IMG/VR virus record: IMGVR_UViG_3300007770_001284
Span: 62,001 to 126,000 of that record
Strand: one strand, 5' to 3'
DNA length: 64,000 nt
Shown here: positions 4,605-48,875 of the stretch, piece after piece
How the letters are laid out: every line of letters begins with the position of its first letter
Numbering within the stretch: the first letter of the stretch is position 1
Notes under the pieces: generated by a model
Database searches by the model: none
The model's input: the letters and a program-made list of their open reading frames with translations, nothing else
What the model was told of the DNA's origin: nothing
Made by a program: the position numbers and the translations under genes

Positions 4605-4927
4605 GTAGTGATAAAAAGACATATGTGTTTGATTTGGATAATACGCTATGCGACACGAAGCGAAACGCTGATGATACAGCGTGGGGGTATTTAGACTCTA
4701 AGCCACATCTCGACAGAATAGAGAGAGTAAATGAGCTGTTTCAACAAGGTCACACAATCATTATAGAGACAGCTCGTGGCTCGTTTTCCAAGGTTAATTG
4801 GTATATCCAGACCCATGAGCAATTAACGTCGTGGGGCCTGAAATTCCATCAGTTAAGAACGGGCGTAAAATTTGCTGCCGACTATTTTATTGATGACAAG
4901 GCAATAAATTCAGAGGAGTTTTTTTAG
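4601..4927 (+). CDS. Small HAD-family capsule-type phosphatase (EcbF-like)
   Basis: FDLDNT, TARG and K..ADYFIDDKA; ATGA overlap with the upstream gene at 4601. Confidence 0.75.
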   Translation: MSSDKKTYVFDLDNTLCDTKRNADDTAWGYLDSKPHLDRIERVNELFQQGHTIIIETARGSFSKVNWYIQTHEQLTSWGLKFHQLRTGVKFAADYFIDDKAINSEEFF

Positions 4928-7306: not shown

Positions 7307-8535
7307 TGGATATTTCTTTTATAGGTCTTGGGAAGCTAGGGCTACCCTTGGCATGCTGTCTTGCCAAGTCAAAAAACAGAGTGCTGTGTGTTGATAAAAA
7401 TGAACATGTATTAGACAAATTAAATCGTAAGACGCTTCCTTTTTTTGAGCCTGGATTAGAAGAGCTTTTGCTTGAGGTGAGTCCAAATATAATAGGCTTT
7501 ACTGATTCATATTTTCGAGCAATCAATGAGACAAATGCGACAATAATTTTAGTGAACACACAATTGGGCGATGATGGATATGCATCTGACTTTGTGGAGT
7601 CCGCACTTTCCGATATTGCTTTAAATCTTCGAATGAGCGATAAGCCGTATCATACAATCGTACTGTCTTCTACAATATTACCCAGTACAATCAAGACAAA
7701 GCTAATTCCTCTAGTAGAGAAAATTTCTAAAAGAAAGTATAAAGAAGGTTTCGGTTTCTCATACGTTCCAGATTTTGTGCGGTTAGGCGCTGTTATTCAA
7801 GATTTTAGAAATCCAGAATTTTTCTTGATAGGTGCGAATTGTGATTATGATTATAACGTAACAAAAGAGATTTTTGAAGGCTTACATGAAAATGATCCTC
7901 CAAACTACAAGTTGACACTTGAAGAAGCAGAGATTGCGAAAGTGGGATTAAACGCTTTTATTGTTAGCAAAATTACATTTGCAAATTTTCTTGGCCGGTT
8001 ATGCGATGATTTAGAAAATGTTGATATTCATAATATTACCGAAGCAATTGGAAATGATCGTAGAATTTCTCCGTTTTTCTTTCGATCGGGAGCGCCATAT
8101 GGCGGAACATGCTTCCCACGTGATACATGGGCCTTTATAAGATTTGCCCAAGACCGTGGTTATCAAGCGAAAAATTTAATATTTGCCGATGAAGTTAATG
8201 AAATGGTTTACCAAGACATCTTGAAGAAAGCATCGAGATTTGAGCGCATAGGAATTTTGGGATTGTCGTTTAAACCAAATTCACCAGTTACGATTGGGTC
8301 ACCGTCCGTTCGATTGATAAAGGACCTCAAAAAACTTGGGAAGCAAGTTTATACATTCGACCCACTTTTGGAAACATACGAAAATTTAGATGATGAAGTG
8401 ACAGCATGCAAAAGCCCACAGGCATGTGTCGATTGTTCTGACGTAGCAGTTGTAATGCACTATGATTTGAGATATAATGGATTATCATTTTTTGATACCA
8501 AAATTATCGACGTTTGGGGTATTGGTAATGAGTGA
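7306..8535 (+). CDS. NDP-sugar 6-dehydrogenase (UDP-glucose/GDP-mannose dehydrogenase family)
   Basis: GLGKLG Rossmann motif, catalytic K (AKVGLN), YGGTCFPRD and GLSFKP. Confidence 0.9.
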   Translation: MDISFIGLGKLGLPLACCLAKSKNRVLCVDKNEHVLDKLNRKTLPFFEPGLEELLLEVSPNIIGFTDSYFRAINETNATIILVNTQLGDDGYASDFVESALSDIALNLRMSDKPYHTIVLSSTILPSTIKTKLIPLVEKISKRKYKEGFGFSYVPDFVRLGAVIQDFRNPEFFLIGANCDYDYNVTKEIFEGLHENDPPNYKLTLEEAEIAKVGLNAFIVSKITFANFLGRLCDDLENVDIHNITEAIGNDRRISPFFFRSGAPYGGTCFPRDTWAFIRFAQDRGYQAKNLIFADEVNEMVYQDILKKASRFERIGILGLSFKPNSPVTIGSPSVRLIKDLKKLGKQVYTFDPLLETYENLDDEVTACKSPQACVDCSDVAVVMHYDLRYNGLSFFDTKIIDVWGIGNE

Positions 8536-8544
8536 GGATGAATC

Positions 8545-9396
8545 GTGCACAGTATTATATTGACCATCCATAATGGCGCGAGACGTATGGCTGATGGCGA
8601 AATATTACTGGAAAGAGTGCTAGATGGTCTCATCAATAATTCGGTGGGCGATTATGAATTATTATGTATGCTGGATGGATGTACCGACGGTTCAGAATTA
8701 ATTGTTGAAAAATATATTGATTCGAGTAAGCACTTAGACATTCGTGCAATTATCACACCAGACATATATGAGCTTCGAACAAATAACGTTGGATTTAAAG
8801 CGTCGAAAGGTGAGTATGTCATAGTCGTTCAGGATGATCAAATTGTGACAGAGCCCGGATGGAACCGGCGGATGCAAGAACCATTTGACGTATTTGATGA
8901 TGTCTTCGCAGTAACTGCCAGAACAGCGCACAATTGGATTTTGAATCCTAATAGCAAACATTTTGGAACAGATACGATTTTAGACAATTGTTGGTGTGAT
9001 ATTTTTCTAGCGACAGATCATGCTTATGGGTATCCTATACAGATGACAAATTATAAAAGAGATGAATTTGCTGTGAGAGGGACAGTTAACCGAGGACCCT
9101 TGATGATCAATCATAAAGATTTAAGAAGTATGAATTATCTCGATGATGAGTTCGCTCCTTGTGATATGGACGATCATGACTTAATGTTTAGAGCGTACAA
9201 ACAACTTGGGAAAATTTGCGGCGGTTATCGAATTGGTGTTGAGTCAAAACCAGCCTGGAGTGGGTCGACAGTCAGCGGATCTGTACCGCCATGGGCGCTA
9301 CGATCTCATCACAAAAATTGTAGAATTTTTTATAGTAGAAACAAAGATGTCCTGACTGAACGTCGTATTGTGGAAAATCGTAGAATTACTCATTAA
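8545..9396 (+). CDS. Glycosyltransferase family 2
   Basis: ILTIHN, DGCTDGS, NVGF..SKGEYVIVVQDD and DDHDL. Confidence 0.8.
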   Translation: MHSIILTIHNGARRMADGEILLERVLDGLINNSVGDYELLCMLDGCTDGSELIVEKYIDSSKHLDIRAIITPDIYELRTNNVGFKASKGEYVIVVQDDQIVTEPGWNRRMQEPFDVFDDVFAVTARTAHNWILNPNSKHFGTDTILDNCWCDIFLATDHAYGYPIQMTNYKRDEFAVRGTVNRGPLMINHKDLRSMNYLDDEFAPCDMDDHDLMFRAYKQLGKICGGYRIGVESKPAWSGSTVSGSVPPWALRSHHKNCRIFYSRNKDVLTERRIVENRRITH

Positions 9397-9420
9397 AAAT
9401 GGAGCAAGGATTTATAGACC

Positions 9421-10158
9421 ATGATTGATCTAACCAGAGGATTTGTCTTTATTCACATTGGTAATTGTGCAGGGACAAGTATAGAATACTCCTTACGTGC
9501 TCCATCGACCGAGCTGGTCCCCTGGGATAACAAAGGCGCTACACAGCACCTTACATATTCTGAAATTAAACGCTGGTATTTGGTTCGAGCCTCCCGACCT
9601 GGCCCAATTGGTAAGCATTTGGTACCAGATATATACGCTAAATTCGATAGCTTGTTTAAGTTTACAGTCATAAGAAACCCATGGGATAGAATGGTTGCGA
9701 AATATAGACATGAAGCAAGGCCTTGGAACCAGTGGCTCGAGATTTGCAAAAGCGGTGTGAAAGCAGGGCCCTCATTTAAAGAATTTCTTTTGGGGAGCAA
9801 AGATTGGAATGTTCATGATTTAAACGACCCATTGTTCGACCACCGCCACTGGGCACCATTCCTTAATTGGTTTGGGAAAGATGACCTAAATTTTTATATA
9901 GGGTTTGATAATCTGGACGAAGATTATCAAAAAGTGTGTGGAATACTGGGTATACAAGATGCTCCCTTAAAAGATTTATTTCCAGATATAGGCGGACCAA
10001 TTAGGGCTCCAAATAGGAAATTAGACGAAAGAGGTAATGCACGACGACATTACAGCTATTATTATGATCAAGAGTCAATAGATTTTATTGCAAAAAGATT
10101 TAAAGAAGACATTGATTTTTTTGGGTTTGAATTTGAAGACAAACGACATGCTAAATAA
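9421..10158 (+). CDS. Sulfotransferase family 2-like protein (altered PAPS-binding motif)
   Basis: FVFIHIGNCAGTS, FKFTVIRNPWDR and C-terminal Y..YYD...F..DI..FGFEF. Confidence 0.75.
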   Translation: MIDLTRGFVFIHIGNCAGTSIEYSLRAPSTELVPWDNKGATQHLTYSEIKRWYLVRASRPGPIGKHLVPDIYAKFDSLFKFTVIRNPWDRMVAKYRHEARPWNQWLEICKSGVKAGPSFKEFLLGSKDWNVHDLNDPLFDHRHWAPFLNWFGKDDLNFYIGFDNLDEDYQKVCGILGIQDAPLKDLFPDIGGPIRAPNRKLDERGNARRHYSYYYDQESIDFIAKRFKEDIDFFGFEFEDKRHAK

Positions 10159-10188
10159 TCATTGGATTGTTGAGAATAGGAGAATAAA

Positions 10189-10833
10189 ATGAGCTTTGCT
10201 GAGTATTTCAAGAAAGAGTTTTATAACAGGCTGCTTAGTCCGAATCACCCTGCAACTGTGCCGCGTGATAGAGCGAGTTGTTTATTGAAGATATTTGAGT
10301 TACTAGATGAAAAAAAGAGTAATGGTCAAAATTATTTTCGTATAGTAGAAACGGGTACAACTCGTCCTGACCATGGACACTTGTGTTTTGGTGATGATGG
10401 GTGCGGTACTTACATTTTTGATAAATTTGTAAACCATTATGATGGGGAAGTATTGTCTGTTGATATCGATGAAAAAAATTGTCGGTACTCTAATGCTCTG
10501 ACATCTGAGAAAACGAAGGTATTCTGTCAAGATTCTGTTGAGATGTTATGGTCTTTACCCGTTGACTTTAAGATTGATTTTCTTTATCTCGATTCTTTTG
10601 ATTTTTCCGCTGAAGACCCCCACCCTTCGATGCTTCATCATGTGAAGGAGCTTTGCGCTGTTATGAAAAATTTAAATCCAGGTGCTTTAATTGTGGTTGA
10701 TGATCATAACGTCGTTGATGATGAGTCTTCGCCAGAGGGTAAAATAGGAAAAGGCTCTTATGTAAAAGACTTCATGTGTAATATAGGCGCGGAGCTGCTT
10801 TTTGAAGGATACCAGATTGGGTGGAAGCTGTGA
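10189..10833 (+). CDS. Class I SAM-dependent methyltransferase (paralog of the 2429 N-domain)
   Basis: IVETGT, SVDI, DFLYLDSFD and IVVDD. Confidence 0.75.
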   Translation: MSFAEYFKKEFYNRLLSPNHPATVPRDRASCLLKIFELLDEKKSNGQNYFRIVETGTTRPDHGHLCFGDDGCGTYIFDKFVNHYDGEVLSVDIDEKNCRYSNALTSEKTKVFCQDSVEMLWSLPVDFKIDFLYLDSFDFSAEDPHPSMLHHVKELCAVMKNLNPGALIVVDDHNVVDDESSPEGKIGKGSYVKDFMCNIGAELLFEGYQIGWKL

Positions 10834-11609
10834 CTTGGGGCCCCACTATAGTCTATTATCTAGATGAGCTTAAAATTGCTTATATAGAGATAAAAAAAGC
10901 CGGTTGCACGACTGTCAAGACCTCCCTTGCGAATTATCTTCTTGAAATTGCTGGGGGGTTAGGCCATCACCAAAAATATAAGCCCAATATAGACGGTGTT
11001 GATTACAATTACGGAACATCGATTCATGATGAGTATTTTACGTGGGCCGGGCAATGGAACAGAGTCCAGTCTTTAGGTGATGATTGGACTGTGTTTACTA
11101 TTGCAAGAGAACCAATCGAGAGGTTTGTTTCTGCATTCTATTCCAACGCAGATAGACCATTTTTATACTCGGATATTAACGAGTATATTACAAATCATTT
11201 CTTATATGAAGATGGTTTACTTTCGACCGTGGGCCACAAAAAAATAAATTTGCATAAATTTCGAGAGGATGGTCATATAGTACCGCAGCACAAAATTTTA
11301 GCCAACGTCTCGGCGCGCATCGACTATATAGGGCACTTAGATGATATGGATTCAGCTTCACATTACATAAGCAGCGTTATACGTGATGATAATTTTAAGT
11401 TTGTTCATGCAAATGCCCGTCCATTAAAAAAGCTCAGCGATGATCGCTTTGGACAACCTCGCGAGAAACGGAATTTCGGATGGCCCCGCTTGACAAAAGA
11501 GTCATTGGATATTTTGTTAGAGTTTGGATATAGACAAGATTATGAACTTTTTGATAGGTACGATCCGGAAAAATGGTTACACAATGTATGGGACGGAATT
11601 ATAAGATAG
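10821..11609 (+). CDS. Sulfotransferase family 2 protein
   Basis: IEIKKAGCTT (5'-PSB), REPIERFVSAFY (3'-PB), HIVPQ and DYELF. May start at GTG 10830. Confidence 0.75.
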   Translation: MEAVTWGPTIVYYLDELKIAYIEIKKAGCTTVKTSLANYLLEIAGGLGHHQKYKPNIDGVDYNYGTSIHDEYFTWAGQWNRVQSLGDDWTVFTIAREPIERFVSAFYSNADRPFLYSDINEYITNHFLYEDGLLSTVGHKKINLHKFREDGHIVPQHKILANVSARIDYIGHLDDMDSASHYISSVIRDDNFKFVHANARPLKKLSDDRFGQPREKRNFGWPRLTKESLDILLEFGYRQDYELFDRYDPEKWLHNVWDGIIR

Positions 11610-12394
11610 CGAACGCTTTGGAAGACATACGCATAGCCGCGTATTTTGGTGGACTGGGTGACAGCCTGCAATTTTCGACGCTTCCAGAACTATTTTCTGA
11701 AGCGGGACACGATGTTTATGTTTGGGACAAAGCATACTTCAGAAATCCTGAGATAAAAGAGCTTGTGTGGGACTGTAATCCTTTTGTGAAGGGAGAGAGA
11801 GCAGGACAATGGAATGCTGGAGACATCCCCGGGCTAAAGTATGAAAATTTATCTGGTAATGTTATCTCTAACTGGGAAACGTTGTTTGGGTTCAAGCCAA
11901 CAAACAAATACCCAAAAATATATTACGAGCCAAAAGATACAAGCAAGGCTAGAAATTCTATTTTGCTAGACTTAACATCAATATCTGGTGATTATCGAGG
12001 CTATTCCGTGTCGGAAGCCGTGGATAAACTGGTTTCTATGTATCCTGGAAGAAGCATATACCAATTGACATTTCACAACTCTTTGAACAACCCTCCAGCA
12101 AGCAATAAAATACAAGAACCATGGAGTAGTCCAAATAATCAAAGATTTTTGTACAATGATTTTGAAAGTGAAAAGATTGTGGTGAATTCGATATTCGAAT
12201 ATTGCGATATGATTTATTCTAGTGATGTTTTTATCACGCTTCATTCAGGGGGTCATGCAGTTTCTAGTGCGATCAAAGAATATAACAGCGATTTAGAGGT
12301 TCACTCTATAATTCGAAAAGTCGATTATGATTACTGCATTCCTCGTGGATTCTTTTTATTCGATAATATCAAATACTCTGTAATTGCCAGGTAA
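11573..12394 (+). CDS. GT9 (heptosyltransferase)-like GT-B glycosyltransferase
   Basis: GGLGDSL..S, NPFV and FITLHSGGHAV; lies directly upstream of the heptose adenylyltransferase. Start uncertain. Confidence 0.55.
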   Translation: MVTQCMGRNYKIANALEDIRIAAYFGGLGDSLQFSTLPELFSEAGHDVYVWDKAYFRNPEIKELVWDCNPFVKGERAGQWNAGDIPGLKYENLSGNVISNWETLFGFKPTNKYPKIYYEPKDTSKARNSILLDLTSISGDYRGYSVSEAVDKLVSMYPGRSIYQLTFHNSLNNPPASNKIQEPWSSPNNQRFLYNDFESEKIVVNSIFEYCDMIYSSDVFITLHSGGHAVSSAIKEYNSDLEVHSIIRKVDYDYCIPRGFFLFDNIKYSVIAR

Positions 12395-12398
12395 TAAA

Positions 12399-12797
12399 TT
12401 GGACAGACATATTTCAAGAAAGGTTGTTTTTACAAATGGGTGTTTCGATATTTTGCACAGGGGACATATAGAGCTCCTACGCTATTGTAACTCTTTGGGG
12501 TACGTTATTGTTGGGTTAAATAGTGATACTAGCGTGAAGAAGTTGAAAGGTAATGGACGACCTTTTTTTTCTCAAGACGATCGAAAATTCATGCTTGAGG
12601 CATGTAGATACGTAGACGAAGTCCGTATTTTTGACGGTGATACGCCATTAGAGATGGTAAAAAATATTTCACCCGATGTGATGGTTAAGGGCGGTGATTA
12701 CGCGCCAGAAGAAGTCGCCGGGAGTGAAGTATGTGAAGTTAAGATATTCAAATTTATCGGTGGTTATTCTACAACAAAAATTCTAGAGAGAGGTTAG
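12399..12797 (+). CDS. hldC: D-glycero-beta-D-manno-heptose-1-phosphate nucleotidyltransferase (RfaE domain II / HldC)
   Basis: FTNGCFDILHRGH, GLNSD.SV..LKG..RP, VKGGDY and GYSTT. TTG start at 12399 preferred over the track start at 12384. Confidence 0.9.
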   Translation: MDRHISRKVVFTNGCFDILHRGHIELLRYCNSLGYVIVGLNSDTSVKKLKGNGRPFFSQDDRKFMLEACRYVDEVRIFDGDTPLEMVKNISPDVMVKGGDYAPEEVAGSEVCEVKIFKFIGGYSTTKILERG

Positions 12798-12799
12798 AG

Positions 12800-13159
12800 T
12801 TGTCAACTTCATTAGAGATCAAATTTGTACCGAAAGGGTGGGGATTTGAGAAGTGGATTGTTAATTGCGATGAGTATTGCGGAAAGCTCCTGTATTTCGT
12901 TAGGGGGAAGTGTTGTTCTTGGCATTACCATGAGTTAAAAGACGAGGTGTTTTATGTCCAGTCGGGCCGAGTTTTAGTCAAGTACTCTGAGGGTGATGAC
13001 ATAAATGAAGCAGATGAAGTTGTTCTGGGCCCTGGCCAAAATTTTCATGTCTATAGGGGTCTTCGCCACAGAGTGATAGCTTTAGAAGACACAGAGCTTT
13101 TTGAATTTTCTACGCAACATTTTGATAGTGATAGTCTTAGGATTGAAAAGGGTGACTGA
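12800..13159 (+). CDS. Cupin-fold protein (sugar isomerase-like)
   Basis: KGWG.E.W, HYH..KDE and distal H (LRHR) metal ligands. Confidence 0.75.
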   Translation: MSTSLEIKFVPKGWGFEKWIVNCDEYCGKLLYFVRGKCCSWHYHELKDEVFYVQSGRVLVKYSEGDDINEADEVVLGPGQNFHVYRGLRHRVIALEDTELFEFSTQHFDSDSLRIEKGD

Positions 13160-13813
13160 ATGCGCAGAGTTTTGATTACCGGTTGTAGCAGGGGTCTTGG
13201 AAAACACCTCATGAATCATTTTGATTTAAATGATTGTGAAGTTTTTAGGCATACTCGACAGCCTCTAAGCGGAAAAAACCAGTTAGCGGGTGATATAAAC
13301 GCTGATAATTTTTGTGATAATTTGGAAGCATTCGTGGAGGCCAACCAAATTGAGGTTTTTGTGAACAATGCTGCTATCCACAGCCCTCGCGCTTTTCTAG
13401 AATATAGTGAAGCAGATATCAAGGATGTTTTGAACACAAATTTAGTGTCTCAAATATTGATGATACAACGTGTATATAGGATTTTTAAAAAGCGTAATAA
13501 AGGCACAATAGTCAATATTAATTCTCTTGCCGGGCGAGGTCCGTCTGCCAACGAAACGGTGTATTGCGCAAGCAAATACGGTCTAAGAGGGTTTTCTGAG
13601 TCTTTGCAAATCGAGTCGATTGGAACCGATATAAAGATTCTTGATTTTTATCCAGGAGCAATGAAAACTGGCATGTGCAAAAACAGAAGCAATTATGACG
13701 ACCTCATGGACCCGGACGAAGTCGCAGAAACGATTGTTAATATTGTCTTAAAAGAAAGAACTACAATTCTTCCGACAGAAACGATAATTCGTCGATTTTT
13801 GTCAGGAAAGTAA
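13160..13813 (+). CDS. Short-chain dehydrogenase/reductase
   Basis: TGCSRGLG, NNAA, NS and YCASK. Confidence 0.9.
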   Translation: MRRVLITGCSRGLGKHLMNHFDLNDCEVFRHTRQPLSGKNQLAGDINADNFCDNLEAFVEANQIEVFVNNAAIHSPRAFLEYSEADIKDVLNTNLVSQILMIQRVYRIFKKRNKGTIVNINSLAGRGPSANETVYCASKYGLRGFSESLQIESIGTDIKILDFYPGAMKTGMCKNRSNYDDLMDPDEVAETIVNIVLKERTTILPTETIIRRFLSGK

Positions 13814-13817
13814 GGAA

Positions 13818-14834
13818 ATGATTATGAGAGCAGCAATTTTAGAAAAGCTTAATTCTCCACTGACCATCAGAGAGGTTGAACTAACCCCCTTGAAGGTTGG
13901 TCAAGTGCTGGTTAGGATATTAGTAAGCGGGTTATGTGGCGCGCAGTTGCACGAAATAAGGGGACACAAGGGTAACGCAAAATTTCTACCGCACTTAATG
14001 GGACACGAGGGCTGTGGTATTGTTGAGAGCATCGGTAGCGGTGTGACAACAGTTTCCCCGGGTGATAAGGTGGTGATGCACTGGAGGCCCAGTACAGGTA
14101 TCGAAGCGCCATTCCCTGAATACATCCTTAATGGAAAAAAAATAAGCAGCGGAAAGGTAACAACGTTAAGCGAATACTCGATTGTTTCTGAAAACAGATT
14201 GACTGTTGTTCCTCCAGACACTCCCGATAATTTTTGCGCTTTGCTTGGGTGTGGATTGACAACAGCGCTTGGAATTATAGACAACGAAATAGATCTTAAA
14301 ATGGGCGAAAGTGTACTGGTTGTTGGATGCGGAGGTGTGGGGCTGAACCTAATACAAGGTGCAAAGCTAAAGAGCGCTTATCCAATTATCGCTGTTGACG
14401 TTTCCGAAGATAAGCGTATAAAAACCCTCGAGGTCGGTGCATCAACCTTTATTAATCCGCTTAAAGATGATATGACTGCTATTTCTGTCGATGTCATTAT
14501 AGACACAACAGGAAATTCAAGGGTGATTGGCTCTATGGTTCATCATCTTTCTAAAAACGGTAGAATTGTTCTTGTGGGACAGCCCTCCCCAGAAGAAGAA
14601 CTAACTATCCCTAATGGCGTTACTCTTTTTGGTGGCTCTGGAAAATCTATTAAAGCTAGCCAGGGTGGAAAAACTAATCCAGCTGAAGATATACCTCGGT
14701 ATGTTAAGATGCACGATGCAGGTCTCCTAGACGTTGATAAAATTGTTACTCATACATTTACGCTAGAGCAAGTCAATGAAGCGTTTGATCTTTTGCAAAC
14801 GGGTACTGCTGGTCGAATTATGGTGAAGATGTGA
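13818..14834 (+). CDS. Zn-dependent medium-chain dehydrogenase
   Basis: GLCG, GHEG, LGCG and GCGGVG. The structural-Zn four-Cys lobe is absent. Confidence 0.9.
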   Translation: MIMRAAILEKLNSPLTIREVELTPLKVGQVLVRILVSGLCGAQLHEIRGHKGNAKFLPHLMGHEGCGIVESIGSGVTTVSPGDKVVMHWRPSTGIEAPFPEYILNGKKISSGKVTTLSEYSIVSENRLTVVPPDTPDNFCALLGCGLTTALGIIDNEIDLKMGESVLVVGCGGVGLNLIQGAKLKSAYPIIAVDVSEDKRIKTLEVGASTFINPLKDDMTAISVDVIIDTTGNSRVIGSMVHHLSKNGRIVLVGQPSPEEELTIPNGVTLFGGSGKSIKASQGGKTNPAEDIPRYVKMHDAGLLDVDKIVTHTFTLEQVNEAFDLLQTGTAGRIMVKM

Positions 14835-15643
14835 GTGGTAGCGTTCAAAGATTTTTAGAAGAAATTAAGATTTATGATTGCGGGTTTCAAAAAATAAGAA
14901 TCGGAAACAAGTCAGACGGTGGATATGTTGCTCTTCATGAAATCTGTGAAAATACCAGAACACTATACGCTTTCGGCGTAGAGGATAATATTACGTTTGA
15001 ACAGGATTTTGTAGATAAGTTCCCACACACAGCTGTGAAATTATTCGACCACACAGTCGATAGGCTACCAGCAGAACACCCCAATTTTGCTTTTATTAAA
15101 AAAGGAATTGCCGCAAAAAAGTCAGATCAATTTTTAGCATTGTCAGACATGATTGATTCTGAGGTCGGTGGTTTGACTATTAAGATGGATATTGAGTGGG
15201 ATGAATGGGCAACGCTAGCATCTCTTAGTAGCAAGCAATTGAAAAAGATTGATCAGTTATTAGTTGAATTTCATTTAATCGCTGTGGACACTGATGAAAA
15301 ATTTATTGCCAATCCCAACGATGACTACGGGCTAACTCCTTATTTTGATTCATTTTATAGATCAGTTTATCAGAAGATAAATGTTGGATTGTTTGACATG
15401 TATTACGATGTGATGAAGACCCTTAATGAAAATTTTTACGCTTTTCATATCCACCCAAATAATTCTTTGGGAAAGATTAACGTCGATGGGCATTGTTTTC
15501 CTCCGCTTATTGAAGTAAGTTTTGTGAGAAAAGCGCTGGTAAAAGATGTCAGCGCTTCAACGTGTAATTTTCCTATATCGGGATTAGATTTTCCAAATAA
15601 ACCTTACAAAAAAGAAATTCAAGATTATTATCCATTAGCTTGA
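14831..15643 (+). CDS. FkbM/Methyltransf_22-like methyltransferase
   Basis: RIGNKSDGGY, FGV, KMDIE, QLLVEFH and HIHPNN. Confidence 0.75.
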   Translation: MSGSVQRFLEEIKIYDCGFQKIRIGNKSDGGYVALHEICENTRTLYAFGVEDNITFEQDFVDKFPHTAVKLFDHTVDRLPAEHPNFAFIKKGIAAKKSDQFLALSDMIDSEVGGLTIKMDIEWDEWATLASLSSKQLKKIDQLLVEFHLIAVDTDEKFIANPNDDYGLTPYFDSFYRSVYQKINVGLFDMYYDVMKTLNENFYAFHIHPNNSLGKINVDGHCFPPLIEVSFVRKALVKDVSASTCNFPISGLDFPNKPYKKEIQDYYPLA

Positions 15644-15652
15644 GGGGAAAGA

Positions 15653-16393
15653 ATGCTGAACAAAAGATCAAAACAGATAAGACGCGAAACCATAAAGCTA
15701 TCCAAAGCAAACGGTGGCTATCATTACGGTGGTTGTTTTTCCGCTGTTGAATTGTTGGTTTCTTTATACGATTATGTGTTAACAGACAACGACAAATTTA
15801 TCTTAAGTAAGGGTCATGCTTGCTGGCCCTATTATGTTTTATTGAGAGAGAGGGGATTCAATCCAAGGTTACAGGGTCACCCCACACTAGACGAAAAGAA
15901 CGGAATTCATTATACCACCGGTAGTGAGGGGCATGGTTTTCCAGCCGCGATAGGAATGGCGCTAGCTAGAAAAATGAAAAACAAGCCCGGGAAAATATAC
16001 GTGATTGTAGGCGATGGAGAGTGTCAGGAGGGAACGACATGGGAATCGTTGCTGCTAGCAGCGCATTACAAGCTAGACAATCTTGTCATAATAGCTGACT
16101 GGAACGGGATACAGGGATCTGGATATACGAAAGACATTTTGCCTATTCCGAATATGGAAAAAGTTACAGCGCTTCTTGGATGGCATGTTTCACAAGTTGA
16201 TGGACATTCTTATGCTGAAATCTTGGCTGCTCTAGAGGAACACGAAAAAGATAAGCCCAGATTTATAATAGCTAATACGATAAAGGGGAAAGGAGTCAGC
16301 TATATGGAGAACCAACCATGTTGGCACGCTCAGTGGCCGGCCCCTGATTATGAAGAACAGGCGATGAAAGAGCTGGAGGATTGTGAAGAATGA
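15653..16393 (+). CDS. Transketolase-like N-terminal (ThDP-binding) subunit
   Basis: H.GG..S, FILSKGH, GDGECQEG..WE, TIKGKG and WH. Confidence 0.9.
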   Translation: MLNKRSKQIRRETIKLSKANGGYHYGGCFSAVELLVSLYDYVLTDNDKFILSKGHACWPYYVLLRERGFNPRLQGHPTLDEKNGIHYTTGSEGHGFPAAIGMALARKMKNKPGKIYVIVGDGECQEGTTWESLLLAAHYKLDNLVIIADWNGIQGSGYTKDILPIPNMEKVTALLGWHVSQVDGHSYAEILAALEEHEKDKPRFIIANTIKGKGVSYMENQPCWHAQWPAPDYEEQAMKELEDCEE

Positions 16394-16872
16394 GACGTGC
16401 TTTTGGAAGAGTAATTGTGAAGTTGGCTGAAAAAGATGAGAACATTGTTTTAGTGACTGGAGATGTTGAACAAGAGATGGAGGAATTCAAAGATCGATGG
16501 CCAGAACGATATTTGAACGCTGGGCTCTGTGAGCAATCAATGATCAGTATGGTTGCAGGAATGGCTCTGGAGGGCTTACGTCCAGTTGTCTATTCTATTA
16601 CCCCCTTTCTTATTGAGAGACCGTTTGAGCAGATCAAAATAGACATCGATGAGCAGAAGTTACCTGTAATGCTGGTAGGACAAGCTGATTATCCGACCCA
16701 TGGACCGACACACCGCCCATTAAACCCAGAGGGGCTGATTGGGCTTTTAAAAAATACAATTGGGTATTTCCCCAGAAATCAACAGGAAACTGAAAAAGCA
16801 ATGATCGACGCATATCTTATGGCTGAACCAGCGATTATCTGCATTAAGAGAGACGGTCTTCCCTTTTTCTAA
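16390..16872 (+). CDS. Transketolase-like pyrimidine-binding subunit (no C-terminal domain)
   Basis: P.RYLNAGLCEQ, GMALEG..P, ERPFEQIK and GPTH; only 160 aa. Confidence 0.85.
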   Translation: MRRAFGRVIVKLAEKDENIVLVTGDVEQEMEEFKDRWPERYLNAGLCEQSMISMVAGMALEGLRPVVYSITPFLIERPFEQIKIDIDEQKLPVMLVGQADYPTHGPTHRPLNPEGLIGLLKNTIGYFPRNQQETEKAMIDAYLMAEPAIICIKRDGLPFF

Positions 16873-16886
16873 AATTTAAGTTAAGC

Positions 16887-17636
16887 GTGAGAATGAAAAA
16901 GATATTGGTCATAGGAGAAAGTTGTCAGGATATTTTTGTCTATTGTAATGCAAGCCGCTTATGTCCAGATATTCCTGTTCCTGTTCTAAATGAAAAATAT
17001 CGGACTGACAACCCGGGTATGGCTGCTAATGTTCATCGAAACATTCACGCCTTGGGTGTGACAAGCGATATTATTACAAACGATAACTGGGGGGATATTA
17101 CTAAAAAACGGTACGTTCATGAAGAGAGTAATCACATGTTCTTTAGGGCCGATTCGGTAGACGAAATAGAAAGAATAGACTTAAGCGTGATATCATATGA
17201 TTATGACCTGATTGTAATATCAGACTATGATAAGGGTTTCTTGACTGAAGCAGATATAAAAATAATATGCTCAAACCATAATAACGTATTTATTGATTCT
17301 AAGAAAATTTTAGGGACGTGGGTTCATGATGCTAGATATATCAAGATCAATCATACAGAATACCAGCGCTCGAAAAGCTATATTGATAAAACAATGTTCG
17401 AAAAAATTATTCGGACTGAAGGCCCAAGAGGGTGTGTATATAGGGAAGTGGTCTATCCAGTCAACAAGGCTGAGGTAAAAGATGTATCGGGCGCGGGCGA
17501 TAGTTTTCTAGCGGCTCTTGTGGTAAAGTTTTTAGAAAATTCTGATATAATAGAAAGTATAAAATTTGCAAATAAGTGCGCTTCTGAAATTGTTACAAAG
17601 AGGGGGGTTTCAACGATACAATGCAACGTGTATTAG
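16887..17636 (+). CDS. hldA: Heptose-7-phosphate kinase (RfaE domain I / HldA, PfkB family)
   Basis: RLCPD.PVPV, GMAANV, ISDYDKG and DVSGAGDSF. Confidence 0.85.
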   Translation: MRMKKILVIGESCQDIFVYCNASRLCPDIPVPVLNEKYRTDNPGMAANVHRNIHALGVTSDIITNDNWGDITKKRYVHEESNHMFFRADSVDEIERIDLSVISYDYDLIVISDYDKGFLTEADIKIICSNHNNVFIDSKKILGTWVHDARYIKINHTEYQRSKSYIDKTMFEKIIRTEGPRGCVYREVVYPVNKAEVKDVSGAGDSFLAALVVKFLENSDIIESIKFANKCASEIVTKRGVSTIQCNVY

Positions 17637-18439
17637 TCACAGGAGCTGACGGTTTTATTGGGAAGAATCTTGCCGCAACCCTAAAAGAAGAAGCGCAAAT
17701 TTTTTGTTTGTCTGAAGACAATTTGGATGACGCTAGATGGAAAGACGTGTGGAACCATTTTCTGGAAGAGGCGTCTCCTGCTGTCATTTTTCATGTCGGC
17801 GCGTGTTCCGACACATTAGAACAAAACGTTAATTTTATGATGCATCGAAATTATGAGACAACAAAGTTTCTAATGGATTGGTGCGTCAACAATAGCGTTC
17901 CAATGATTTACTCTTCTTCTGCTGCAAGCTATGGAGTGACTGAAGACTATCCATCGAACTTATATGGATGGAGTAAGTACGTCGCAGAAGATTATGTGGT
18001 GAGTAATTCTGGCATCGCATTACGTTATTTTAATGTGTATGGCCCGGGGGAGGAACGCAAGGGGAAGATGGCGTCGATTGTGTATCAGATGTACAAAAGG
18101 CACCAAGGAAATTTGGAGTGCAAGTTATTTCCAAAACGACCTCTTCGAGATTTTGTGTATGTGAAAGATGTTGTGTCTGCAAACATTCATGCTTACAAGA
18201 ATTACGAATCGTTAAGAGGATCATACTACGATGTTGGTAGCGGTCAATCAAGGGCATTTGAGGATATTCTTGATTTGCTAGAAATCGAATATTCTTATCA
18301 CTCCACTCACACGATTCCAGAGGGCTATCAATTTTTCACCTGCAGCGATAAAGAAAAGTGGCTACCGGGCTGGGCCCCAGAGTATCAGCTCGAAGCAGGA
18401 ATCGAGGATTATGGAAAAGTATTACGATTACAGCGTTGA
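17621..18439 (+). CDS. hldD: ADP-L-glycero-D-manno-heptose 6-epimerase
   Basis: TGADGFIG, HVGACSDT, SSAASYG, YGWSK, RYFNVYGPGEERKGKMAS and RDFVYVKD. Confidence 0.85.
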   Translation: MQRVLVTGADGFIGKNLAATLKEEAQIFCLSEDNLDDARWKDVWNHFLEEASPAVIFHVGACSDTLEQNVNFMMHRNYETTKFLMDWCVNNSVPMIYSSSAASYGVTEDYPSNLYGWSKYVAEDYVVSNSGIALRYFNVYGPGEERKGKMASIVYQMYKRHQGNLECKLFPKRPLRDFVYVKDVVSANIHAYKNYESLRGSYYDVGSGQSRAFEDILDLLEIEYSYHSTHTIPEGYQFFTCSDKEKWLPGWAPEYQLEAGIEDYGKVLRLQR

Positions 18440-19070
18440 CGATTATCAATTCGTCGAAGCCATATCTGGTTTATTTGATTGTGGTAATTTACAGTATCTG
18501 CATGAAATGCACATTGACGAATATGAGTTTTTTGATAAGCCGGGAAAAGATTCGGATACCATATTCCATCAAAAGTTTTATAACAAAATGAGATCTGGCT
18601 GGCCAGAATTTCTTGAATTATATCAAAAATTTATTAGAGAATTTATAGCTCCCATTACTAATGCGAAAGACCAACTCATATATCAAAAGTGGCCTACATT
18701 TCGGGTACACCTCCCAAATAACGTAGCAGTGGGCGGATGGCATAAGGATAGCGACTACAATCACCCTCTTGGGGAGACAAATTTTATACTTGCATTAACT
18801 CCTATGTTCGAGAGTAATACAACTATTGCGGAAAGCGAGCCGGGGAAGATGGATTTTCATCAGCTTGAATTAATGCCTGGTCAGATTGTGCGCTTTAATG
18901 GAAACCAGTGCACTCATGGAAACCTCCCTAACAAGACTGGCGTTACCAGGGTGAGTTTCGATTTTAGGATCATGATGCCAGAAGACTATAACTCAAATTA
19001 TCGCTTAACTTCGCTAAGCAAAGGAAACAAATTTCTTATTGGTCACTATTATGAGGTTATGGAGATATGA
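18411..19070 (+). CDS. StrG-like Fe(II)/2OG-type oxygenase
   Basis: PTFRVHLP, HKD (HxD) and HGN..N.TG.TRVSFDFR. Confidence 0.6.
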   Translation: MEKYYDYSVDDYQFVEAISGLFDCGNLQYLHEMHIDEYEFFDKPGKDSDTIFHQKFYNKMRSGWPEFLELYQKFIREFIAPITNAKDQLIYQKWPTFRVHLPNNVAVGGWHKDSDYNHPLGETNFILALTPMFESNTTIAESEPGKMDFHQLELMPGQIVRFNGNQCTHGNLPNKTGVTRVSFDFRIMMPEDYNSNYRLTSLSKGNKFLIGHYYEVMEI

Positions 19071-19993
19071 GGGTTGTAATCACAGGCGGAACAGGGATGG
19101 TCGGAGCTGGATTTCGAAGCATAGAGACAGAGCATGAACTTATATTTGTTGGCTCGAAAGATTATGACTTAAGATATCTTGATGATACTCGATGTATGGT
19201 GAGGGACCACTGTCCTGAAGCAATAATACATCTTGCTGCCAGGGTGGGCGGAGTAAAGGGCAACTCTGATTTTGTCGCGGACTTTTTTTCTGATAATATT
19301 CGGATAAATACAAACGTCTTGTCGGTTGCACATAAGCTTGGAGTAGGGAAGGTTGTTTCTTTGTTATCAACTTGCGTATACCCTGATGCAGTTGTGTATC
19401 CTCTAACAGAAGAGCAGATTCATGACGGTGAGCCGCACCCCAGCAACTTTGGTTATGCGTACGCTAAGAGGATGCTGGACGTACACTCAAGGGCCCTTCG
19501 TCAGCAATATGGATGTAACTTCATCTGCGCAGTGCCAAACAATCTGTACGGTCCTTATGATAATTTTGATTTAGAAAATGGGCATGTCATACCATCGATA
19601 ATAAGAAAGGTGTGGGAAGCAAAGCAAACGGGAAATCCACCTGTTCTTTGGGGCGATGGGTCTCCATTAAGGGAATTTACGTACTCAAGAGATATTGCAA
19701 TTGCGTTGCTTTTTTTATTAGAAAATTATGATTTGGCTGCTCCTGTGAATATAGGCACGACAAACGAGGTAAGCATCAAAAACATAGTGAGCATGATTTG
19801 TGAAAGTTTAGAATACGACGGAGAAATTGTTTGGGATATTACAAAGCCAAGCGGTCAATTTAAGAAACCAAGCTCTAATAAGCGCTTTCTTTCTCTTGGT
19901 TGGCCATCTGCCTCGTATACGCCTCTGCGGAAGGGTATACAATTGACATGCAAATGGTTTAAGGAAAGCTATCCAAATGTAAGGGGAGTTTGA
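19067..19993 (+). CDS. fcl: GDP-L-fucose synthase
   Basis: GGTGMVG, HLAARVGG, STCVYP, YAYAKR, PNNLYGP.DNF, HVIP and WGDGSPLREF. Confidence 0.93.
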   Translation: MRVVITGGTGMVGAGFRSIETEHELIFVGSKDYDLRYLDDTRCMVRDHCPEAIIHLAARVGGVKGNSDFVADFFSDNIRINTNVLSVAHKLGVGKVVSLLSTCVYPDAVVYPLTEEQIHDGEPHPSNFGYAYAKRMLDVHSRALRQQYGCNFICAVPNNLYGPYDNFDLENGHVIPSIIRKVWEAKQTGNPPVLWGDGSPLREFTYSRDIAIALLFLLENYDLAAPVNIGTTNEVSIKNIVSMICESLEYDGEIVWDITKPSGQFKKPSSNKRFLSLGWPSASYTPLRKGIQLTCKWFKESYPNVRGV

Positions 19994-20703
19994 AAATGAA
20001 TGTCTTAGTTCCAATGGCTGGCGCGGGCAGTCGATTTATGTCTGCGGGCTACGTTCTACCAAAGCCATTAATCGACGTTGATGGTACTCCAATGATACAA
20101 ACTGTTGTTGAAAATCTCGGTTATGATGCAACTTATATTTTTGTCGTTCAGGCTTCGCATTACCACGAATATGGTCTTGCAAGTTTTTTGGAATCTATAG
20201 CTCCAGGGTGTAAAATAGTCTTGGTAGACGGAATGACAGAGGGAGCAGCGTGTACAACACTTTTGGCTAGAGACTATATCGCTAATAATGACTCGCTACT
20301 GATTGTTAATTCTGACAATGTATTCGATTGGGACAACATGGCATTCTTAAGAGACGCAACGCAACCCGGCGTTGATGGGTGTATTCTTGTATTTAACGGT
20401 ACGAACCCAAAATGGAGCTTCGCGAAGACGGACGAAACAGGCCGAGTAACGGAAGTAGCTGAAAAAAAGCCCATCAGCGATATAGCCACTGCTGGAGCAT
20501 ATTTTTGGGCAAGAGGCTCTGATTACGTACAAGCAGCAAGTCAAATGATAGAAAAAGATATAAGGACTAATAACGAATTCTATGTCTGTCCAGTATACAA
20601 TGAGTTAATCAATAATGGTGGCTACGTTACAGTGTCATACGTCGAGAAGATGTGGGGACTTGGAACGCCAGAAGACTTACAATATTATTTGGAGCATCAC
20701 TAG
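19990..20703 (+). CDS. Capsule-type nucleotidyltransferase
   Basis: PMAGAGSRF...PKPLI, TEGAACT, EVAEK, NEFYVCPVYN and LGTPEDL. Confidence 0.85.
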   Translation: MKMNVLVPMAGAGSRFMSAGYVLPKPLIDVDGTPMIQTVVENLGYDATYIFVVQASHYHEYGLASFLESIAPGCKIVLVDGMTEGAACTTLLARDYIANNDSLLIVNSDNVFDWDNMAFLRDATQPGVDGCILVFNGTNPKWSFAKTDETGRVTEVAEKKPISDIATAGAYFWARGSDYVQAASQMIEKDIRTNNEFYVCPVYNELINNGGYVTVSYVEKMWGLGTPEDLQYYLEHH

Positions 20704-20704
20704 T

Positions 20705-21337
20705 TTGGGATATACGTCTTTTATTTTTGACAATGACGGGGTGCTTGTAGACACCACTGAGCTACAAGTTAAAGCAACGCTAGCAGCAATTGACGAGGTC
20801 TTGAATTTAAAGCTAACAACTCAAGAAGATATTTCTGTCCTTAAGTCAACTATAACTACTCGTGATAAGCTCATAAAGCTTTGTCAAAAGGGGTACTTTA
20901 CTCTTAATAAAGTAGACGCTGTATACGAAAGAAAAAAAATAATCACAAATAAAATGATGAGTATGTTAGACTCTGAAGACTATCAAGACAAAATTGAAAT
21001 GTTTGAATTTTTACGACGAGAAAATAAAAACATAGCGGTAGTAACGAATGCGAACCGTGCTTCGACAGTTACACTACTAAATAATCTTGGTTTTATGAAG
21101 TACCTAGATGTGTTAATAACGAATAATGATGTAAAGAACACAAAGCCACACGCCGAACCATATGTTAGGGCGATGCTTCAATTAGGCGGCTCAATTGAGG
21201 ACTTCATAATATTCGAAGACTCTGTAACAGGTTTAGCCTCGGCTCGCGGCTCAGGCGCAACTGTTTACGAGATCAGCAATTTTAGAGATGTAAATACCCA
21301 ATTGATGGAAGAAATAATAGCGGGAAATTACAAATGA
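20705..21337 (+). CDS. HAD-superfamily phosphatase (beta-PGM-like)
   Basis: FDNDGVL, VTN, KPHAEPY and EDS..G. TTG start at 20705 after GGAG preferred over the track start at 20615. Confidence 0.85.
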   Translation: MGYTSFIFDNDGVLVDTTELQVKATLAAIDEVLNLKLTTQEDISVLKSTITTRDKLIKLCQKGYFTLNKVDAVYERKKIITNKMMSMLDSEDYQDKIEMFEFLRRENKNIAVVTNANRASTVTLLNNLGFMKYLDVLITNNDVKNTKPHAEPYVRAMLQLGGSIEDFIIFEDSVTGLASARGSGATVYEISNFRDVNTQLMEEIIAGNYK

Positions 21338-21792
21338 TTTTTATTGCTCATCGAGGAAACACCAACGGCCCCGTGCCGTCCTTAGAAAATAATCCAGACT
21401 ATATTGATAAAGCGCTACAGGCAGGTTTCTATGCTGAGGTCGATGTTCGGCAGGGTGAAAGTTCCGAAACGTTTATTGTGGGTCATGATTTTGGTGAATA
21501 CCAATTAGATATTTCTTGGTTCCTCCAGCGCAGAGAAAAATTGTTTATTCATGCTAAAGACTTAAGCACGTATGCTTATTTTCTAAGTGATAATCAAGTG
21601 TGGCATGTTTTCTGGCATCAAAACGACGCATACACCATGACATCTTCCGGATATATATGGGCGTATCCCGGTAGCGAATTAAACGATAAGTGTATATGTG
21701 TGATGCCAGAAACAGCGTCATATTCCTCTGAGCAATTATCGATATGTGCAGGTATTTGCAGCGATTATGTTGCTTCAATGTACAGCGGGTAG
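21334..21792 (+). CDS. Truncated glycerophosphodiester phosphodiesterase-like protein
   Basis: IAHRGN, EN, EVDV, GHD, HAK and GICSDY. Confidence 0.75.
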   Translation: MIFIAHRGNTNGPVPSLENNPDYIDKALQAGFYAEVDVRQGESSETFIVGHDFGEYQLDISWFLQRREKLFIHAKDLSTYAYFLSDNQVWHVFWHQNDAYTMTSSGYIWAYPGSELNDKCICVMPETASYSSEQLSICAGICSDYVASMYSG

Positions 21793-21837
21793 TGTATGCT
21801 AAAACATCTTCTAAAATTCTAATATTATTTTGTTTAT

Positions 21838-26128: not shown

Positions 26129-26129
26129 C

Positions 26130-28306: not shown

Positions 28307-28312
28307 GGATGA

Positions 28313-30432: not shown

Positions 30433-30435
30433 TGT

Positions 30436-31455: not shown

Positions 31456-31477
31456 CGTGGTGAATTTATAGAAGTTG

Positions 31478-31484
31478 ATAATTA
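31478..31484 (+). promoter_or_regulatory. Candidate late promoter ATAATTA
   Basis: ATANTTA recurs in intergenic gaps at 31478, 48869, 56360 and 59863. Confidence 0.5.
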
Positions 31485-31499
31485 ACCCCAGGTGGTTGT

Positions 31500-48842: not shown

Positions 48843-48868
48843 TACCGGCTACCACGTTGCTTTTCGTA

Positions 48869-48875
48869 ATATTTA
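48869..48875 (+). promoter_or_regulatory. Candidate late promoter ATATTTA
   Basis: Member of the ATANTTA set; ends 23 nt before ATG 48899. Confidence 0.5.

Follow-up and report, generated by a model that had tools for sequence, protein, structure and literature searches.

A marine phage NDP-heptose gene set with a cupin and a mini-HAD phosphatase as proposed substitutes for GmhA and GmhB

Introduction

The first step of ADP- and GDP-heptose synthesis is catalyzed by GmhA (TIGR00441), a sedoheptulose-7-phosphate (S7P) isomerase of the SIS alpha/beta fold, and the 7-phosphate is usually removed by GmhB (TIGR00213). A survey of NDP-heptose biosynthetic enzymes across kingdoms (Tang et al. 2024, as summarized in PMC11573728 and PMC11461863) includes viral kinase and nucleotidyltransferase homologs and the (F/L)xxGxSTT motif of the nucleotidyltransferase. 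According to those summaries, the phosphatase is absent in viruses, and isomerase-kinase-transferase fusions are described with no mention of a cupin.

Aldose-ketose isomerization by cupins has precedents. The D-lyxose/D-mannose ketol-isomerases (Thermofilum 7NZO-7NZQ, B. subtilis YdaE 2Y0O; Pfam PF07385) convert a ketose to a manno/lyxo-configured aldose, though the known enzymes use unphosphorylated sugars. The small cupin phosphomannose isomerases (PMIs; Thermococcus 7ZVY, 7ZVM) and the type II PMI cupin domain (PF01050) act on sugar phosphates. Another metal-dependent cupin interconverts glucose-6-P and fructose-6-P, a reaction normally carried out by a non-cupin enzyme.

Cyanophages are known to carry a four-gene "LPS/heptose" cluster, for example P-SSM2 PSSM2_309-312 (T4-GC 304-307), S-CAM1, and P-TIM68. 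It has been in GenBank since the P-SSM2 genome and is mentioned as heptose-related LPS genes, but under what appear to be wrong names: the HAD is labeled "phosphoheptose isomerase" and the cupin "putative nucleotidyltransferase" or "cysteine dioxygenase". Here, we analyze a 64,000-nucleotide stretch (the window) of a 254.7-kb T4-like marine phage record, IMGVR_UViG_3300007770_001284, in which the same module is split up within a larger island. The phage is not a close relative of cyanophages, as its major capsid protein is 36% identical to that of cyanophage S-H38. We found no paper proposing that the cupin replaces GmhA, and none of these proteins has been assayed.

Gene content of the locus

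The original prediction described a viral NDP-heptose pathway without recognizable GmhA or GmhB, and the gene content bears this out. The genes are tightly packed on the + strand. The HldC-like nucleotidyltransferase (12384-12797, 137 aa) has TIGR02199 as its best family (E 5e-43, 146 bits against a cut-off of 181.5), and its best solved-structure match is Burkholderia HldC 5x9q (E 1.6e-24); an HxGH motif is present. The HldA-like kinase (16887-17636) has a shortened PfkB fold of 249 aa against the 315-position model TIGR02198 (E 5e-33, 114.6 bits against a cut-off of 345) and contains a GAGD motif. The HldD-like 6-epimerase (17621-18439, 272 aa) matches TIGR02197 (E 1e-59, 202 bits against a cut-off of 274.6) and carries GxxGxxG and YxxxK. 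All three are best hits but fall below the curated equivalog cut-offs, so the true substrate could differ, for example a hexose.

Profile searches of the whole 254,743-bp record, which CheckV rates as 75% complete, revealed no GmhA (TIGR00441, PF13580) and no GmhB (TIGR00213). An unknown host might supply both steps. However, there is also no SIS_2 match in five complete cultured cyanophage genomes that carry the cupin.

The cupin (12800-13159, 119 aa) starts 2 nt after hldC. It matches Cupin_2 and has an intact G-x5-H-x-H-x4-E-x6-G motif followed by a later His. Two HADs are present. The first (4586-4927) is a mini-HAD of 113 aa, which has the HAD catalytic motifs and no cap, as does GmhB. 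Its DxDxT, TARG, K, and DD motifs are invariant in 14 homologs. It is nearest to the EcbF/BcbF-type "capsule biosynthesis" proteins, with matches to PDB 9iqw (E 2.6e-9) and 1xpj, although its best NCBIfam model, TIGR01689, scores only 26 bits against a cut-off of 162. It has no TIGR00213 match and is shorter than the 176-position GmhB model (about 105-113 aa). The second HAD (20615-21337, 240 aa) is of the beta-phosphoglucomutase type. The original prediction proposed that a HAD may replace GmhB, naming both as present; the comparison below supports this idea but singles out the mini-HAD. The second HAD is found in only 6 of 80 loci.

The cupin module in phages, and natural fusions

In 80 related viral loci, a mini-HAD homolog is present in 72 and lies immediately upstream of the cupin in 62, overlapping it in 56. 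HldC lies within 4 kb in 70, HldA in 58, and all four genes occur together in 54. The cupin is the most conserved of the four, with a median identity of 79%, compared with 56% for HldC, 47% for HldA, and 42% for the HAD. In cyanophages such as P-SSM2 it is 60-65% identical to the window protein. We note that in the window itself the HAD lies 7.9 kb from the cupin.

In phage Bellamy, the cupin sits between HddA-like (NF049969, 279 bits) and HddC-like genes of the GDP-heptose route, followed by an RmlD-like reductase and a GMD-like dehydratase, with the mini-HAD 2 kb upstream. The cupin and the HAD are retained while the kinase and nucleotidyltransferase change type and nucleotide. This bears on the alternative that the cupin is a tailoring enzyme acting on the finished nucleotide-heptose, such as a C3 or C3/C5 epimerase like the CapF cupin domain or the RmlC-like heptose epimerases, with the host providing the GmhA and GmhB steps. 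Tailoring enzymes also cluster with pathway genes, and the incomplete record leaves room for this reading. Nevertheless, the cupin stays 60-80% identical whether its partners are ADP-type (HldA/HldC) or GDP-type (HddA/HddC), which fits a step before nucleotide attachment, and we consider the tailoring role unlikely.

Natural fusions also exist: HldA-cupin, cupin-HldA, HldC-cupin, and HAD-cupin (designated P0139). The kinase domain of one HldA-cupin fusion (designated P0245) scores 347 bits, above the TIGR02198 cut-off, and its gene lies beside STT3 and a GT9-containing transferase.

Distribution in archaea

We next examined 201 small archaeal genomes. All 11 cupin carriers have HldA (hypergeometric P = 4e-8). 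Among the 47 HldA-positive genomes, 30 have GmhA only, 10 the cupin only, 1 both (a weak SIS hit), and 6 neither (Fisher P = 1.5e-5). These genomes are MAGs and are related to each other, so the P values are indicative only. The near exclusion of GmhA is what a replacement would give, rather than an add-on.

Three genomes (designated G229, G190, and G248) contain cupin-hldD-hldA-gmhB/hldC operons, canonical except for the missing GmhA. Their HldA scores 382-399 bits (cut-off 345), while the GmhB part scores 128-156 bits, above the 149.6 cut-off only in G229. Two others (G241 and G217) have HldA-cupin fusions. In sister genomes, GmhA occupies the same adjacent or fused position. Furthermore, in one genome (G292) the mini-HAD lies beside canonical GmhA genes and HddA- and HddC-like genes.

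These data also bear on a second alternative, that the cupin is a PMI converting fructose-6-P to mannose-6-P, which either feeds the GDP-mannose/GMD branch of the same island (19990-23897) or belongs to a module that works entirely on hexose and makes an NDP-beta-mannose. The nearest bacterial cupin (53% identical) lies directly upstream of a GDP-mannose 4,6-dehydratase and not beside heptose genes. Relatives at 34-39% identity are fused to NTP_transferase plus the ManC beta-helix, or match PF01050 above its cut-off, and fusions to NeuB also occur among the more distant relatives. The window has its own NTP_transferase, beta-PGM-like HAD, and GMD. On the other hand, in phages the cupin tracks the heptose kinase, nucleotidyltransferase, and HAD rather than GMD or ManC genes. 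A PMI would not be expected to exclude GmhA, nor does an HldD-type 6-epimerase have a target in a hexose. The window cupin does not hit PF01050, and the P0245 kinase domain exceeds the heptose-specific cut-off. The PMI reading therefore appears improbable.

Homology of the cupin and proposed pathway

The AF2 model of the cupin has a pLDDT of 96.5. The fold alone does not discriminate between functions, as CapF (a sugar-nucleotide epimerase domain), KdgF, and Pac13 score as well as the isomerases (Z 13.7-15.6), with the CapF cupin domain among the top structural matches (Z 15.6). At the sequence-profile level, the family is nearest to the D-lyxose/D-mannose isomerases 2y0o (1.1e-11) and 7nzo (2.7e-11), whereas the small cupin PMIs reach only about 1e-5 and CapF only 1.3e-4. 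Shared features include YCxK, HxH...KxE(T)F, His, and E-x-S motifs. The residues named as metal ligands and intermediate stabilizer in the Thermofilum enzyme (H75, H77, E88, H143, and K86; PMC8378251) align with H42, H44, E49, H90, and K47, all invariant or nearly so. The window protein is about 50-100 residues shorter than these isomerases, about 25% identical, and does not reach the PF07385 threshold. Quercetinases and oxalate decarboxylases also match the profile, and the cupin fold is functionally promiscuous, leaving a remote possibility that the protein has a role unrelated to sugar chemistry, such as ligand sensing or the dioxygenase activity suggested by the RefSeq name. The adjacency, translational overlap, fusions, and phyletic pattern are too consistent across phages and archaea for an incidental linkage, and the best profile matches are sugar isomerases.

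Five independent kinds of comparative evidence, namely adjacency in phages, retention upon the switch to HddA/HddC, domain fusions, archaeal complementarity with GmhA, and homology to manno/lyxo-specific isomerases, support in silico the proposal that the cupin replaces GmhA. The same cupin appears to stand in for GmhA in thousands of marine phage sequences and in some archaea. We infer that the phage encodes a self-sufficient pathway from S7P to an NDP-glycero-manno-heptose, a reading to which we assign a probability of roughly 75%. In this scheme, the cupin isomerizes S7P to D-glycero-D-manno-heptose 7-phosphate using a divalent metal held by His42, His44, Glu49, and His90, probably through a cis-enediol intermediate with Glu49 and Lys47, as proposed for its D-lyxose isomerase relatives. 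HldA phosphorylates C1, the mini-HAD removes the 7-phosphate, HldC adds the nucleotide, and HldD epimerizes C6. Each of these activities is inferred, as are the nucleotide used and the acceptor of the sugar. The original prediction also named ADP-heptose as the ALPK1 ligand, which has no evident bearing on a marine phage.

Neighboring genes and the HldC motif

The genes between the cupin and hldA may supply and tailor the sugar. A split transketolase is encoded by 15653-16393, the N-terminal thiamine-diphosphate-binding subunit (Transketolase_N E 4e-29; PDB 6yak, E 9e-53), and 16390-16872, the pyrimidine-binding subunit (Transket_pyr E 8e-21). The latter matches only residues 36-197 of the 341-aa C-terminal chain 6yaj and lacks the usual C-terminal domain. 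This transketolase may provide S7P. A classical short-chain dehydrogenase (13160-13813, 217 aa; adh_short E 3e-34), probably a sugar-tailoring enzyme, is present in only 15 of 80 loci. It is followed by a Zn-dependent medium-chain alcohol dehydrogenase (13818-14834, 338 aa; ADH_N and ADH_zinc_N); an ADH recurs next to a transketolase-like gene in heptose modules of P-TIM68 and of a metagenome contig. The product of 14831-15643 (270 aa) has no Pfam or PDB hit, but is a candidate FkbM-like methyltransferase based on ESM-Atlas features (0.98 to Methyltransf_21 clusters, 235 of 256 features shared).

The weakest element of the original prediction is the GT9-like label for 11573-12394 (273 aa), which has no Pfam, NCBIfam, or PDB sequence hit. 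ESM-Atlas places viral GT9 clusters as the nearest family-bearing clusters (feature score 0.95, TM 0.64-0.67), and homologs lie next to hldC or the cupin in 9 of 80 loci. This candidate, a possible heptosyltransferase that may transfer the sugar, is a lead only. Finally, the HldC C-terminus reads FIGGYSTT, with Tyr in place of the Arg linked to promiscuity, as the original prediction noted. This is the norm in this phage family, with no Arg seen in 71 homologs.

Genomic setting and the heptose genes

The virus record spans 254,743 bp, is rated 75% complete by CheckV, and belongs to a phage. It encodes a T4-type major capsid protein (PF07068, 221 bits) and a baseplate wedge gene at position 31994 of the window, with very large ORFs of up to 2,398 aa downstream of the latter. 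The capsid protein (locus G000:C1:149418-153224 in our numbering of genomes and contigs) is 635 aa long and matches the Gp23 model in two pieces separated by a large insertion. Its nearest relatives are an uncultured 484-kb phage (51% identity) and Flavobacterium phage 'immuto' (47%), whereas it is only 36% identical to the capsid protein of cyanophage S-H38. No psbA was found in the record. It is therefore a distant T4-like jumbo phage rather than a typical cyanophage. Because the heptose module is nonetheless shared with cyanophages, these relationships suggest that the module moves horizontally between phage lineages. Bases 2429-27290 of the window form one co-directional, tightly packed glycan-biosynthesis island.

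The original prediction, that the window contains genes for HldC, HldA and HldD but no recognisable GmhA or GmhB, is confirmed, although each gene can only be called HldC-, HldA- or HldD-like. In each case the heptose-specific NCBIfam model is the best hit but scores below its curated cut-off: 146 against 181.5 bits for the HldC-like protein (12384-12797; TIGR02199), 114.6 against 345 bits for the HldA-like protein (16887-17636; TIGR02198), and 202 against 274.6 bits for the HldD-like protein (17621-18439; TIGR02197). The HldA-like match falls in two stretches, with about 40 model positions missing. The HldC-like protein carries the HxGH and (F/L)xxGxSTT motifs and its best solved relative is Burkholderia HldC (5x9q, E 1.6e-24), while the HldD-like protein contains GxxGxxG and YxxxK. 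A 119-aa cupin with a complete metal-binding motif follows hldC after 2 nt, and HADs lie at 4586-4927 and 20615-21337. The record contains no match to GmhA (TIGR00441, E<=1), to the SIS_2 domain (PF13580, E<=10) or to GmhB (TIGR00213, E<=10). The label 'GT9-like', given in the original prediction to the product of 11573-12394, is less secure. Pfam, NCBIfam and PDB sequence searches are blank, a fold predicted from the single sequence without an alignment failed (pLDDT 32), and the label rests only on an ESM-Atlas lead to viral GT9 clusters.

The C-terminus of the HldC-like protein reads FIGGYSTT. The motif linked to promiscuity, as in the STTR5-type heptose nucleotidyltransferases, is (F/L)xxGRSTT (PMC11573728), and the original prediction was correct in noting Tyr at the Arg position. 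Among 71 phage homologues this residue is Tyr in nearly all, with a few Phe, His or Leu, and never Arg.

A conserved four-gene module in phages

A pattern search with the cupin found 484 relatives in viral contigs at 75-99% identity, and a word search found 4,855 protein clusters at 90% identity, in addition to 411 loci in prokaryote genomes. Of the 80 viral loci that we examined, 72 have a homologue of the 113-aa HAD at 4586, 71 have HldC and 67 have HldA. The usual layout is HldA/HldC, then the HAD, then the cupin. The HAD lies immediately upstream of the cupin in 62 loci and overlaps it in 56, and all four genes lie within 4 kb in 54. We note that the loci are not all independent, as some are near-identical contigs. 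The cupin is the most conserved member of the module, with a median identity of 79%, against 56% for HldC, 47% for HldA and 42% for the HAD. In the window the module is dispersed, with the HAD 7.9 kb upstream of the cupin.

Thirty-five cultured phage records, nearly all of Synechococcus or Prochlorococcus phages, carry the cupin at 60-65% identity. The gene module itself is long known from cyanophage genomes, but its public annotation is wrong in a consistent way. In P-SSM2, genes PSSM2_309-312 are annotated, in order, as nucleotidyltransferase, carbohydrate kinase, 'phosphoheptose isomerase' and 'putative nucleotidyltransferase'. The 'phosphoheptose isomerase' is in fact the mini-HAD of about 105 aa, and the last gene is the cupin, which RefSeq calls 'cysteine dioxygenase' in its copies of these genomes. 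A genome announcement repeats the heptose reading of these genes (PMC7378029). Five complete cupin-bearing genomes (S-SM2, P-SSM2, S-CAM1, P-TIM68 and Bellamy) have no SIS_2 match, and the lack of GmhA is therefore not an artefact of an incomplete record.

In phage Bellamy the cupin lies between a GHMP kinase, whose best family is HddA (NF049969, E 7e-83, full length), and an NTP_transferase, whose best family is HddC. An RmlD-like reductase and a GMD-like dehydratase follow, and the mini-HAD lies 2 kb upstream beside a class II aldolase. This is the layout of a GDP-(6-deoxy-)heptose cluster with the cupin where gmhA would be. A step that precedes nucleotide attachment explains why one cupin serves both ADP-type and GDP-type sets. 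The Bellamy-type kinase and transferase are absent from the 80 closest viral loci.

Domain fusions

An exhaustive search of 50%-identity representatives found 3,295 relatives, several of which are multidomain proteins. These include the HldA-cupin proteins P0180 and P0245, the cupin-HldA protein P0182, the HldC-cupin proteins P0142, P0147 and P0203, and the HAD-cupin protein P0139, whose HAD half is 40% identical to that of the window. The kinase domain of P0245 scores 347 bits, above the TIGR02198 cut-off. Two contexts are informative. P0245 lies in an archaeal contig next to STT3 (AglB) and a transferase containing a GT9 domain, and P0142 is followed by an ADH, a transketolase-like gene, PfkB, an epimerase and a 110-aa gene, which is the window's own order. 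Other 'fusions' are with HNH-like or unrelated N-termini and carry no functional message.

We also note that several contigs binned into cellular MAGs look like phage DNA. A 'Methanobacteriota' contig has Bellamy-type genes at up to 92% identity, and a 250-kb 'Bifidobacterium breve' MAG contig carries HldC-cupin-ADH...HldA-HldD-HAD in the window's order at 47-61% identity.

Phyletic distribution in cellular genomes

To examine the relationship between the cupin and GmhA, we sampled 201 small archaeal genomes from the phylum of one cupin carrier. The cupin profile matched 11 genomes, HldA 47 and GmhA 56. All 11 cupin genomes have HldA (hypergeometric P = 4e-8), and the cupin is adjacent or fused to HldA in 6 of them. 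Among the 47 HldA-positive genomes, 30 have GmhA only, 10 the cupin only and 6 neither, and the single genome with both has a weak SIS hit (87.5 bits) located 330 kb from HldA (Fisher P = 1.5e-5). These are related MAGs, so the P values are indicative rather than exact, but the pattern is nevertheless what non-orthologous displacement predicts. Three of the genomes (G229, G190 and G248) have an operon consisting of the cupin, an hldD-like gene, hldA, and then a GmhB-HldC fusion. HldA scores 382-399 bits in these genomes, above its cut-off, whereas the GmhB part scores 128-156 bits, above its cut-off only in G229. This is a complete ADP-L-glycero-manno-heptose gene set that lacks only GmhA. Two further archaeal genomes, G241 and G217, carry HldA-cupin fusions, and in sister genomes GmhA takes the same adjacent or fused position.

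One bacterial chromosome (G005, locus C1:3141440-3142300) has the cupin and an HldE-like gene (314 bits) but no canonical GmhA. It also has a 599-aa ORF with weak PfkB and SIS pieces, and we did not count it as clean evidence. The closest bacterial cupin, at 53% identity, lies next to a GDP-mannose 4,6-dehydratase in a glycan cluster, and relatives at 34-39% identity are fused to ManC-type transferases or to NeuB, or match the phosphomannose isomerase (PMI) model PF01050. The wider family therefore includes probable phosphomannose isomerases, and a PMI or dual activity for the phage enzyme is not excluded.

Structural relationships and predicted function of the cupin

The AlphaFold model of the cupin is confident (pLDDT 96.5) and shows an all-beta barrel, but structural searches with Foldseek and VIA-align confirm only that it is a cupin. 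Isomerases, CapF, KdgF, Pac13 and dioxygenases are all tied at Z 13.7-15.6, so the fold does not decide the function. A tailoring epimerase is less likely than an isomerase. In Pfam, the window protein hits only Cupin_2, Cupin_1 and cNMP_binding and does not reach the gathering threshold of the D-lyxose/D-mannose isomerase family PF07385, although some homologues give sub-threshold or marginal Lyx_isomer hits. The family profile is more informative. Its best PDB matches are the D-lyxose isomerases 2y0o (1.1e-11) and 7nzo (2.7e-11), ahead of quercetinases (3.6e-9), and the aligned motifs extend beyond the generic cupin signature. The Thermofilum enzyme binds Mn through H75, H77, E88 and H143, and K86, two residues before the Glu, is proposed to stabilize the enediol intermediate (PMC8378251). 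These residues align with H42, H44, E49, H90 and K47 of the phage protein, all of which are invariant or nearly so. Lyxose and mannose isomerases convert a ketose to a manno/lyxo-configured aldose and, from established carbohydrate chemistry, the conversion of sedoheptulose 7-phosphate (S7P) to glycero-manno-heptose 7-phosphate is the same stereochemical problem.

The original prediction that the cupin replaces GmhA is thus supported, and it can be sharpened. On comparative evidence alone, in the absence of any biochemistry, we consider it likely (probability roughly 0.7) that this cupin family is a second, non-homologous class of S7P isomerase, used in place of GmhA by very abundant marine phages, by a set of small-genome archaea and probably by some bacteria, and that the ~105-aa HAD is a second class of heptose-bisphosphate phosphatase. 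NDP-heptose synthesis is a textbook pathway and a drug and immunology target (GmhA, HldE, ALPK1 agonists), and every described version starts with the SIS-fold GmhA. A cupin performing this step would be a case of non-orthologous displacement, one that genome surveys scoring heptose capacity by GmhA and GmhB homology would miss, and it would correct the long-standing wrong names in cyanophage genomes. The assignment of a cupin as the S7P isomerase and a mini-HAD as the phosphatase appears to be new, as literature searches for cupin with sedoheptulose, heptose and isomerase, and for cupin with GmhA, which did not cover subscription journals, found nothing relevant.

The mini-HAD phosphatase candidate

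The original prediction also proposed that a HAD replaces GmhB, and the mini-HAD at 4586-4927 is the better candidate. The other HAD, at 20615, is of the beta-PGM type and occurs in only 6 of 80 loci. All four HAD motifs (DxDxT, S/T, K and DD) are present in the mini-HAD, with D16, D18, T20, T62, K95, D103 and D104 invariant in 14 homologues. It does not match the GmhB model and hits only generic HAD-IIIA/IIIC models, PNKP-phosphatase models and the EcbF/BcbF capsule phosphatase model TIGR01689. Its nearest relatives are PDB 9iqw ('capsule biosynthesis protein', E 2.6e-9), for which no paper was found, 1xpj and the EcbF/BcbF family, but the scores of 26 bits for the window protein and 52 bits for the HAD-cupin fusion are far below that family's cut-off of 162 bits. 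Commentaries on Tang et al. state that the phosphatase of the pathway is absent in viruses (PMC11461863). This protein is the obvious candidate, and would explain that report. Nevertheless, the evidence for the HAD is weaker than for the cupin, as the archaeal cupin operons use ordinary GmhB, and S-SM2 and Bellamy place a copy next to an aldolase. In archaeal genome G292 the mini-HAD lies beside canonical GmhA genes and HddA- and HddC-like genes, and it therefore also pairs with canonical partners.

Other genes of the island

An SDR, a Zn-ADH (13818-14834), an FkbM-like methyltransferase candidate (14831-15643) and a split transketolase that lacks the usual C-terminal domain (15653-16872) lie between the cupin and hldA. 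The methyltransferase candidate has no Pfam hit, a PDB sequence search returned nothing useful, and its probable FkbM type is based on an Atlas score of 0.98. The gene at 18411-19070 likewise has no Pfam hit and shows only a weak match to a 'sporadic carbohydrate cluster 2OG-Fe(II) oxygenase' (TIGR04324, E 4e-4). An ADH together with a transketolase-like gene recurs in heptose modules of P-TIM68, of several viral loci and of a metagenome contig that has an HldC-cupin fusion. Transketolase makes S7P, and substrate supply is the simplest reading, though the pair may instead build a modified sugar. A carbamoyltransferase of the NodU/CmcH type recurs next to the heptose genes or the cupin in phages, an archaeal contig and a bacterium, which hints at a carbamoylated sugar.

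A second nucleotide-sugar branch lies at 19067-23897 and comprises an epimerase, an NTP_transferase, the beta-phosphoglucomutase-type HAD, an unknown 152-aa gene, an SDR dehydratase/epimerase and a strong GDP-mannose 4,6-dehydratase (432 bits). It probably makes a GDP-6-deoxyhexose. The upstream part of the island (2429-11609) holds two sulfotransferase-family genes (9421 and 10821), a GT2, a UDP-glucose/GDP-mannose dehydrogenase, a class I/II aminotransferase and a PaaK-like adenylating enzyme (4927-6264), suggesting a sulfated, acylated or aminated glycan, which is unusual for a phage. Virion glycosylation and remodeling of the host surface are both possible uses of the heptose. A DNA search of window 24875-32800 against cultured phages gave no match. 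Finally, two more glycosyltransferases (phrog_2170) lie at 24875-27290, just before the baseplate genes, and two giant ORFs (2,398 and 1,612 aa) lie downstream at 41646-53737. Their closeness to the glycan island would fit glycosylation of virion or fibre proteins.
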